A stretch of 63,577 bases of DNA, filler included, from Dimorphilus gyrociliatus (Eukaryota > Animalia > Annelida): the NCBI GenBank assembly GCA_904063045.1. It is 4 parts of 4 records of this genome, joined end to end, with 100 filler letters (N's around TTAATTAATTAA, not from the genome) between each part and the next. Parts side by side here need not be neighbours in the genome. Positions count along the whole stretch, not along the records: positions 25,121 to 42,924 come from CAJFCJ010000210.1; 3 more parts are not named here. One strand, 5' to 3'. The notes under the pieces were generated by a model that was not told the origin of the DNA, did not search any database, and was given only the letters and a program-made list of their open reading frames with translations. How positions within the stretch are numbered: the first letter of the stretch is position 1; the number at the start of each line of letters is the position of its first letter. The position numbers and the translations under genes are program-made. This document shows positions 37,861-38,322 of the stretch, in pieces.

Positions 37861-38322
37861 ATGGAAATCACAATGGAAAATCCTGACGTTTACTTTGCTA
37901 ATGAAGCAATTAAAGAAGCTTATCAAAGTCTGAATGAGGGTGGAATTCCTATTGGTTCAGTTCTGGTAATCAATGGTAGAATTGCTGGAAGAGGACACAA
38001 TCAAAGCATTCAGAAGAAAACATCAATTCTTCATGCTGAAACCGATGCCCTCGAAAATGCGAAAAGACTTTCGCAGGAGGACTATTCAAAGGCAACTTTG
38101 TATACAACACTATCACCCTGCTTCCTATGCACTGGTGCTATCCTGCTCTATAAAATTCCAAGAGTTGTTCTTTGCGACAATGAAAATTTTATGGGAGAGG
38201 AACAACTTCTAAAAGCTAAAGGTGTTGAAGTTGTAAACTTACAGTTGAAAGAATGTGTTCAACTGATGAAAGAATTTATCAACGACAAACCAGATTTATG
38301 GAATGAAGTAATTGGAGTTTAA
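37861..38322 (+). CDS. FCY1: Intronless cytosine deaminase, FCY1/bacterial nucleoside-deaminase type
   Basis: EA..SL.EGGIPIGSVLV..G.I.GRGHN..IQK..SILHAE.DALENA.RL; LYTTLSPCFLCTGAILLY.IPRVV..DN.NF.G.E.LL...GVEV; C-terminal WNE.IG. Zinc motifs HAE and PCxxC intact. Confidence 0.88.
   Translation: MEITMENPDVYFANEAIKEAYQSLNEGGIPIGSVLVINGRIAGRGHNQSIQKKTSILHAETDALENAKRLSQEDYSKATLYTTLSPCFLCTGAILLYKIPRVVLCDNENFMGEEQLLKAKGVEVVNLQLKECVQLMKEFINDKPDLWNEVIGV

Follow-up and report, generated by a model that had tools for sequence, protein, structure and literature searches.

A transcribed FCY1-type deaminase gene of probable prokaryotic origin, with an altered substrate pocket, in the genome of the annelid Dimorphilus gyrociliatus

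To our knowledge, animals are generally held to be without cytosine deaminase, and this is the basis of the selectivity of 5-fluorocytosine (5-FC) as well as of suicide-gene therapy with cytosine deaminase. The same nominal reaction, cytosine to uracil, is catalysed in Escherichia coli by CodA, an amidohydrolase with an unrelated TIM-barrel fold, and CodA gave no match to the deaminase described below in any of the searches made here. The cytosine deaminase of Saccharomyces cerevisiae (Fcy1; PDB 1P6O, 1UAQ) has the CDA fold with a C-terminal lid helix, the zinc ligands His/Cys/Cys and a catalytic Glu, and the tRNA adenosine deaminases TadA and ADAT2 share with this group the superfamily and the zinc motif (PF00383/PF14437). 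Prokaryotes possess FCY1-like proteins which are named "nucleoside deaminase" or, in the KEGG style, "cytosine/creatinine deaminase". A precedent in an animal is offered by Caenorhabditis elegans, whose GDA-1 and GDA-2 are CDA-fold guanine deaminases attributed to a transfer from bacteria to nematodes (PMC13419446). They resemble the present case in that an animal holds a bacterial-type CDA-fold nucleobase deaminase which other animals lack, but they belong to another subfamily, act on guanine, contain introns, are found conserved throughout the nematodes and have a function established by genetic and biochemical work. No description of an FCY1-type cytosine deaminase in an animal was found in the searched literature. 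The gene presented here belongs to this family, not reported in animals before, and in its product a substrate-binding residue that is otherwise invariant is naturally replaced.

The window, that is the whole stretch of DNA analysed (63,577 nucleotides, filler included), joins four parts of the D. gyrociliatus assembly GCA_904063045.1, and the deaminase gene lies on the plus strand of the piece at positions 25121-42924 (CAJFCJ010000210.1). Taken as a whole, the reading that is regarded here as moderately probable is that of a resident, transcribed, single-exon gene which comes from the prokaryotic FCY1-like branch, was acquired horizontally and has an altered substrate pocket. The sequence-only reading of this DNA had described a 153-aa ORF with intact HAE and PCxxC motifs and a TATA-like element upstream, and all of these were recovered. 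The ORF is complete from ATG to TAA (153 codons plus stop) and occupies exactly 37861-38322 as a single-exon coding sequence of the FCY1-type (CDA-fold) deaminase family. An in-frame stop stands 14 codons 5' of the ATG, the start context being ACGAAATGG. At the local base composition the chance of 153 open codons is about 4e-6; in the flanks no stop-to-stop frame is longer than 59 codons on one side and 78 on the other. The H58-A59-E60 codons at 38032-38040 (+) supply a zinc ligand and the catalytic glutamate and align to yeast H62/E64; the P86-C87-F88-L89-C90 codons at 38116-38130 (+) give the zinc-binding PCxxC in the alignment to yeast cytosine deaminase. The motifs quoted earlier, GGIPIGSVLV, TTLSPC..C.GAILLY.IP.VV and WNE.IG, are also all present. 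Upstream, the TATA-like element is a TATATAA at 37790-37796 (+), 65 nt 5' of the ATG and about 50-60 nt 5' of the first bases of the RNA-derived contigs (37847-37857). Downstream on the same strand there are two poly(A)-signal-like hexamers, ATTAAA at 38348-38353 and TATAAA at 38560-38565, with another ATTAAA at 38500. A search of the piece 25121-42924 against Rfam returned no match.

Parts of the 5.5-kb stretch around the deaminase are contained in five sequencing runs. Three of these, X2 (organism B, study P2) together with X3 and X4 (both organism A, study P1), are labelled "DNA?" or "?" and are taken to be RNA-derived because their contigs carry the neighbouring genes in spliced form. Across the deaminase the same runs yield unspliced contigs, so the earlier description of the gene as intronless agrees with transcript data in which both neighbours are spliced. 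The contigs cover 37847-38606 without a single difference from the genomic sequence and roughly outline a transcript, its plus strand being inferred from the ORF; they lie at 37857-38413 and 38384-38471 in X2, at 37852-38589 in X3, and at 37889-38606 and 37847-37918 in X4. In this approximate transcript of the deaminase the 5' UTR is short and the 3' UTR extends over about 90-285 nt. Its ends are consistent across the two studies and fit the TATA element and the ATTAAA and TATAAA hexamers: the first ATTAAA lies 5' of the X2 contig end at 38413, and TATAAA lies 24-41 nt 5' of the X3 and X4 contig ends (38589 and 38606). The k-mer depth is 350-870 on the deaminase versus 1-12 on the exons of the neighbours, assembled contigs of this kind giving only an indication of ends, strand and level. 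Between the deaminase and the right-hand neighbour another RNA-derived contig of low depth was noticed in X3 (38741-38931); it overlaps a 70-codon ORF on the minus strand (38654-38866) that matches no known family, and it is possible that this contig is a small unannotated transcript.

The assignment of the protein to the FCY1 type is supported by sequence and by predicted structure alike. The Pfam family PF00383 (dCMP_cyt_deam_1) matches at 1.7e-21. The 13 best matches among solved structures are all chains of yeast cytosine deaminase (E 2e-35 to 9e-34, residues 16-152), and the structures of TadA and ADAT2 follow with weaker values (E 5e-20 to 1e-13). An AlphaFold2 (AF2) monomer model, which has a pLDDT of 93.2 and includes the helix at residues 144-150, superposes on yeast cytosine deaminase with TM 0.92-0.93 and an rmsd of about 1 A, while TM against TadA/ADAT2 is 0.71-0.79. 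A tRNA adenosine deaminase of the TadA/ADAT2 type was accordingly rejected as the identity of the protein: the protein reaches 69.2 bits with the NCBIfam TadA equivalog, whose cutoff is 150, every chain of yeast cytosine deaminase ranks ahead, and the TadA/ADAT2 alignments stop at about residue 104-126, leaving the FCY1-type C-terminal helix uncovered. With Fcy1 the protein has in common its fold, its length, the C-terminal lid helix, the His/Cys/Cys zinc ligands and the catalytic Glu, at about 48% identity by manual alignment count. The yeast enzyme is fungal, whereas the present protein groups with prokaryotes and is encoded in an animal-type genome.

The pocket is largely, but not entirely, that of the yeast enzyme. 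The equivalents of yeast Ile33, Asn51, Phe114 and Trp152 are kept as I31, N47, F110 and W147, while the position of yeast Asp155, a substrate-binding residue, is taken by V150, encoded by GTA at 38308-38310 (+). Other departures from Fcy1 are R53 to S, G72 to K, M93 to L and E110 to D. When this protein is aligned with 199 close members of the family, all 200 being non-identical, it deviates at 6 of the 55 columns that are conserved to at least 95% (R49S, M61T, G68K, M89L, E106D and D150V), which is the highest number in any row; the other members have a median of 0 and a maximum of 5. At position 150 the other 199 homologues all have Asp, and no compensating acidic residue is found in the alignment at positions neighbouring V150. 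The valine is unchanged in the RNA contigs and is therefore not an assembly error. In yeast the contact of Asp155 is presumably made with the ring N1-H of the ligand. Glu64, Asn51, Gly63 and this residue all hydrogen-bond the ligand (PMC11000218), and in a deep mutational scan of Fcy1 the substrate-binding and the catalytic residues were found to tolerate mutation very poorly when cytosine has to be used (10.1101/2021.11.29.469899). No link between yeast Arg53 and Asp155 was found in the literature. It has to be added that six distant FCY1-like clusters (P0241, from the green alga Netrium digitus, and P0233, P0222, P0175, P0246 and P0213) also have no C-terminal Asp in the motif W-x-E-D-I-G. 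The position has therefore changed elsewhere in the wider family, and these sequences hint at subfamilies with other substrates.

The consequences of this single residue decide how the gene product is to be understood. The sequence-only reading had proposed a role in pyrimidine salvage or in defence; the dot in its motif WNE.IG hides the D-to-V change at the substrate aspartate, and for this reason the proposed role is in doubt. Nothing was found here in favour of a function in defence. Judged by its residues, the protein is, with a fair degree of confidence, an active deaminase. That cytosine is its main substrate is, on the same residues, somewhat doubtful, because an otherwise invariant substrate-binding aspartate has been lost. 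The competing reading that survives best is that of a canonical cytosine deaminase, in which D-to-V is tolerated or compensated and cytosine is efficiently converted to uracil, with salvage and 5-fluorocytosine sensitivity as the outcome. All zinc and catalytic residues and four of the five pocket residues are kept, the predicted fold is nearly identical to that of yeast cytosine deaminase, the apparent expression is high and the overall rate of change is just mildly above that of the bacterial sister protein, all of which speak for it. It is made doubtful by the Asp of 199 out of 199 close homologues, which in yeast is a ligand contact, by the intolerance of the substrate-contact residues of Fcy1 to mutation for cytosine use, and by the lack of a compensating acidic residue at the neighbouring positions. 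A more specific version of the favoured reading, in which the domesticated prokaryotic deaminase has a re-tuned pocket and a new substrate, such as a cytosine substituted at N1 or otherwise modified, or another amidine, is tentative and rather unlikely to be right as it stands; if true, it would give animals an enzymatic activity that is not known from them.

It is improbable that the gene is an expressed relic, that is the product of a real transfer which is now under relaxed constraint and is functionally decaying or non-catalytic. The protein is the most deviant of the 200 members at conserved columns, the loss of the substrate-binding Asp included, and its terminal branch is longer than that of its sister (0.74 in a path of 1.15), as would be expected of such a relic. 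The 153-codon frame is nevertheless intact where the frames of the flanks reach only 59 and 78 codons, zinc and catalytic residues are all in place, and transcript contigs are abundant in three runs. Identity of about 65% at the DNA level to prokaryotic genes implies, moreover, a long residence without disruption. In a relative-rate test 18-24 unique changes were counted on the lineage of the protein versus 9-16 on that of its bacterial sister, an excess that is mostly non-significant (p 0.04-0.5, depending on the outgroup). The rate is only mildly raised relative to the sister, and the protein is therefore not decaying wholesale; what stands out is the location of the changes, not the overall rate.

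Under the favoured reading of a horizontally acquired gene with an altered pocket, the most likely course of events can be sketched as follows. A gene for an FCY1-like (CDA-fold) nucleobase deaminase of the prokaryotic branch would have entered the animal lineage horizontally, long ago, and after the transfer its codon usage would have become host-like, and a TATA-type promoter and signals of the poly(A) type would have been added. The zinc and catalytic set (H58, E60, C87, C90) and most of the pyrimidine pocket (I31, N47, F110, W147) would have been retained, and this apparatus most likely supports the hydrolytic, zinc-activated removal of the amino group from a cytosine-like heterocycle. As Val now stands where the ligand-bonding Asp was, recognition at that contact would be weakened or changed; either the binding of cytosine would be weaker or the specificity may have moved to substrates which need no such hydrogen bond. 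A role in the use or degradation of dietary nucleobases is plausible. If the enzyme is active, the animal is predicted to be sensitive to 5-FC, and the gene might serve as a native counter-selection handle in the host organism. Besides the nematode guanine deaminases, the gene would be one more case in which a bacterial CDA-fold nucleobase deaminase has been wired into the nucleotide metabolism of an animal. The natural D-to-V change can also be seen as a ready-made experiment on substrate recognition in the family and bears on the engineering of yeast cytosine deaminase.

The relatives of the protein point to prokaryotes. A word search returned 8000 of them, the best being 59-65% identical and none closer; those with names or inspected contexts are bacterial or archaeal. 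When each prokaryotic species was represented by one genome, a scan brought up 580 loci in many phyla at 53-63% identity. An exhaustive search of 50%-identity representatives gave 77 clusters at E 1e-30 or better, among which the named ones are a basidiomycete group (P0166, P0145, P0186), the green-algal P0241 and one member of the Pirellulaceae. The nearest Atlas clusters are prokaryotic. No animal homologue is found among the named best matches, the named fraction being a minority of the database relatives. The earlier description of the gene as being of fungal/bacterial type can be narrowed to the prokaryotic type (65% identity) rather than the fungal one (46-50%): pairwise identity is 64.9% to the bacterial protein P0001, 46.5-49.7% to fungi and 41% to the alga.

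A maximum-likelihood tree (101 rows, 152 columns, LG+C20+F+G4), whose support values are rough since the bootstrap had incompletely converged, places the protein as sister to P0001 (UFBoot 99 / SH-aLRT 95). The pair stands inside a clade of 11 rows (96/86) with an Elusimicrobiales genome, a protein from a Nanoarchaeia MAG and other proteins of prokaryotic context, and the fungi form their own clade elsewhere (96/87). In the AU test a tree forced to unite the protein with the fungi is worse by a delta lnL of 13.7 and is not rejected (p 0.365), the alignment being short. The horizontal acquisition proposed by the sequence-only reading is thus upheld by prokaryotic nearest relatives and by the sister position to P0001, and left unproven by an AU test that retains the fungal clade; acquisition from a prokaryote is probably the best reading of these sequences. 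As to the donor lineage, P0001 is, judged by sequence, the best available pointer. It was found (loci L001 and L002) in two assemblies with adjacent accessions, GCA_040960375.1 and GCA_040960315.1. The inspected contig is 94 kb long and has flagellar FHIPEP, gamma-glutamyl transpeptidase and SpoU genes next to P0001, and the locus has 48.5% G+C.

The prokaryotic FCY1-like proteins (P0001, L079 of Elusimicrobiales and P0003 of the Nanoarchaeia MAG) are like the animal-borne protein in their 59-65% full-length identity and in their motifs, but they are encoded in dense gene arrays and all keep WNEDIG. The present gene is, in contrast, monocistronic, with eukaryote-type signals, AT-rich host-like codons and six changes at positions conserved in the family. 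Two particular routes of transfer were considered and rejected. The best viral contigs are just 48-54% identical and form their own clade, and a co-transfer with LamG_3 genes is not borne out, the LamG exons of the window having no similarity to the LamG_3 gene that stands beside the prokaryotic P0011.

Ancient vertical inheritance, in which an opisthokont FCY1 was kept here and lost in almost all other animals, is very improbable. It draws on the AU test, which leaves a clade of the protein with fungi unrejected (p 0.365), and on a host lineage that is poorly sampled, the relatives of the neighbouring GPCR being only 41%, 30% and 22% identical. Against it stand the free tree with its bacterial sister (99/95) inside a prokaryotic clade, the 65% identity to bacteria versus 46-50% to fungi, the absence of named animal sequences from the best matches, the very many independent losses that would be needed, and the lack of introns in a deaminase whose neighbours bear them.

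It can be said with good confidence that this is a real host gene of non-animal origin, and it looks like a resident, active one. Its GC3 is 0.28, to be compared with 0.22 in host exons and 0.64 in the bacterial sister gene. The deaminase has a log-likelihood ratio of synonymous codons (host exons against the neighbourhood of the bacterial sister) of +15.0, the sister gene one of -94.7. Since some prokaryotic relatives are AT-rich too (GC3 0.31), these figures are no proof that the composition has moved towards that of the host. At the DNA level the gene is about 65% identical to prokaryotic genes, from which it follows that the transfer, if any, is old. No bacterial coding remnants were detected by tblastx in the flanks of the deaminase, and the search for flanking repeats or target-site duplications gave just AT-rich matches at chance level; a scan of the region for sigma-70 promoters and terminators was uninformative. 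The prokaryotic relatives whose loci were inspected are, without exception, surrounded by densely packed genes. Of the five runs, only X1 contains every 31-mer sampled from the 5.5-kb stretch; this run may be the source of this very assembly, and the exact protein has no record in other public assemblies. That a gene of an associated AT-rich microbe was wrongly joined to an animal contig is hardly credible: AT-rich prokaryotic relatives do exist, and the physical linkage to the flanks comes from the assembly, with no bridging contig among the displayed contigs of X1, but the piece has no gaps, each side of the gene has about 1.3 kb of AT-rich flank devoid of prokaryote-like genes, unlike the dense arrays around the inspected relatives, the RNA contigs run for 90-285 nt into non-coding 3' sequence identical to the contig, the sampled 31-mers are all present in X1, TATA and poly(A)-type signals are in place, and the best relative is just 65% identical, which leaves no known microbe as a source.

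The surroundings of the gene are those of an animal genome, and the earlier statement that it shares a contig with intron-containing LamG genes and a GPCR holds in the assembly. The left neighbour (35516-36440, minus strand) is a LamG_3-like gene with an intron at 35996-36230, and the right one (39575-40467, plus strand) is its LamG-like paralogue with an intron at 39771-39828; both are transcribed away from the deaminase. RNA-derived contigs skip the two introns with zero mismatches (GT..AG on the minus and on the plus strand respectively), and the flanking genes are hence spliceosomal. The two genes are divergent, head-to-head paralogues (E 5e-9) with weak similarity to Laminin_G_3, and the deaminase is found inside the 3.1-kb intergenic interval common to them, at 1.3-1.4 kb from each. 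At 29461-31746 on the minus strand there is a gene for a rhodopsin-type 7TM receptor with LDLa and LRR parts (a relaxin-receptor-like architecture), which marks the contig as animal-type. Among 5.8 billion proteins this receptor has three relatives, two from contigs (41% and 30%) and an insect relaxin receptor (22%); so few relatives indicate, as far as sequence comparison goes, either that the host lineage has been sampled very poorly or that the receptor family evolves fast. The piece 25121-42924 contains zero N and has a uniform G+C of 22-34%.

Several minor observations were made in the same piece. A 511-codon ORF at 25145-26680 (+) is composed of leucine-rich units of about 28-30 residues, ribonuclease-inhibitor-like by eye, with no Pfam match at E 0.01; a shorter ORF related to it, with a weak LRR match, lies at 26886-27554. 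Contigs of X1, X2 and X3 match 39870-39899 and 40102-40138 with different sequence between, which suggests further LamG-like paralogues elsewhere in the genome. In the minus-strand LamG-like exon on the left, an X2 contig skips the 63 nt at 35691-35753 (GT..AG on the plus strand) and an X3 contig reads through them; possible explanations are an intron of an antisense transcript, an allele with an in-frame indel, or a paralogous copy. Finally, positions 40929-40970 are matched by X1 contigs with a k-mer depth of up to about 8700 and occur in X3 and X4 as well, probably belonging to a high-copy repeat or a transposable element.
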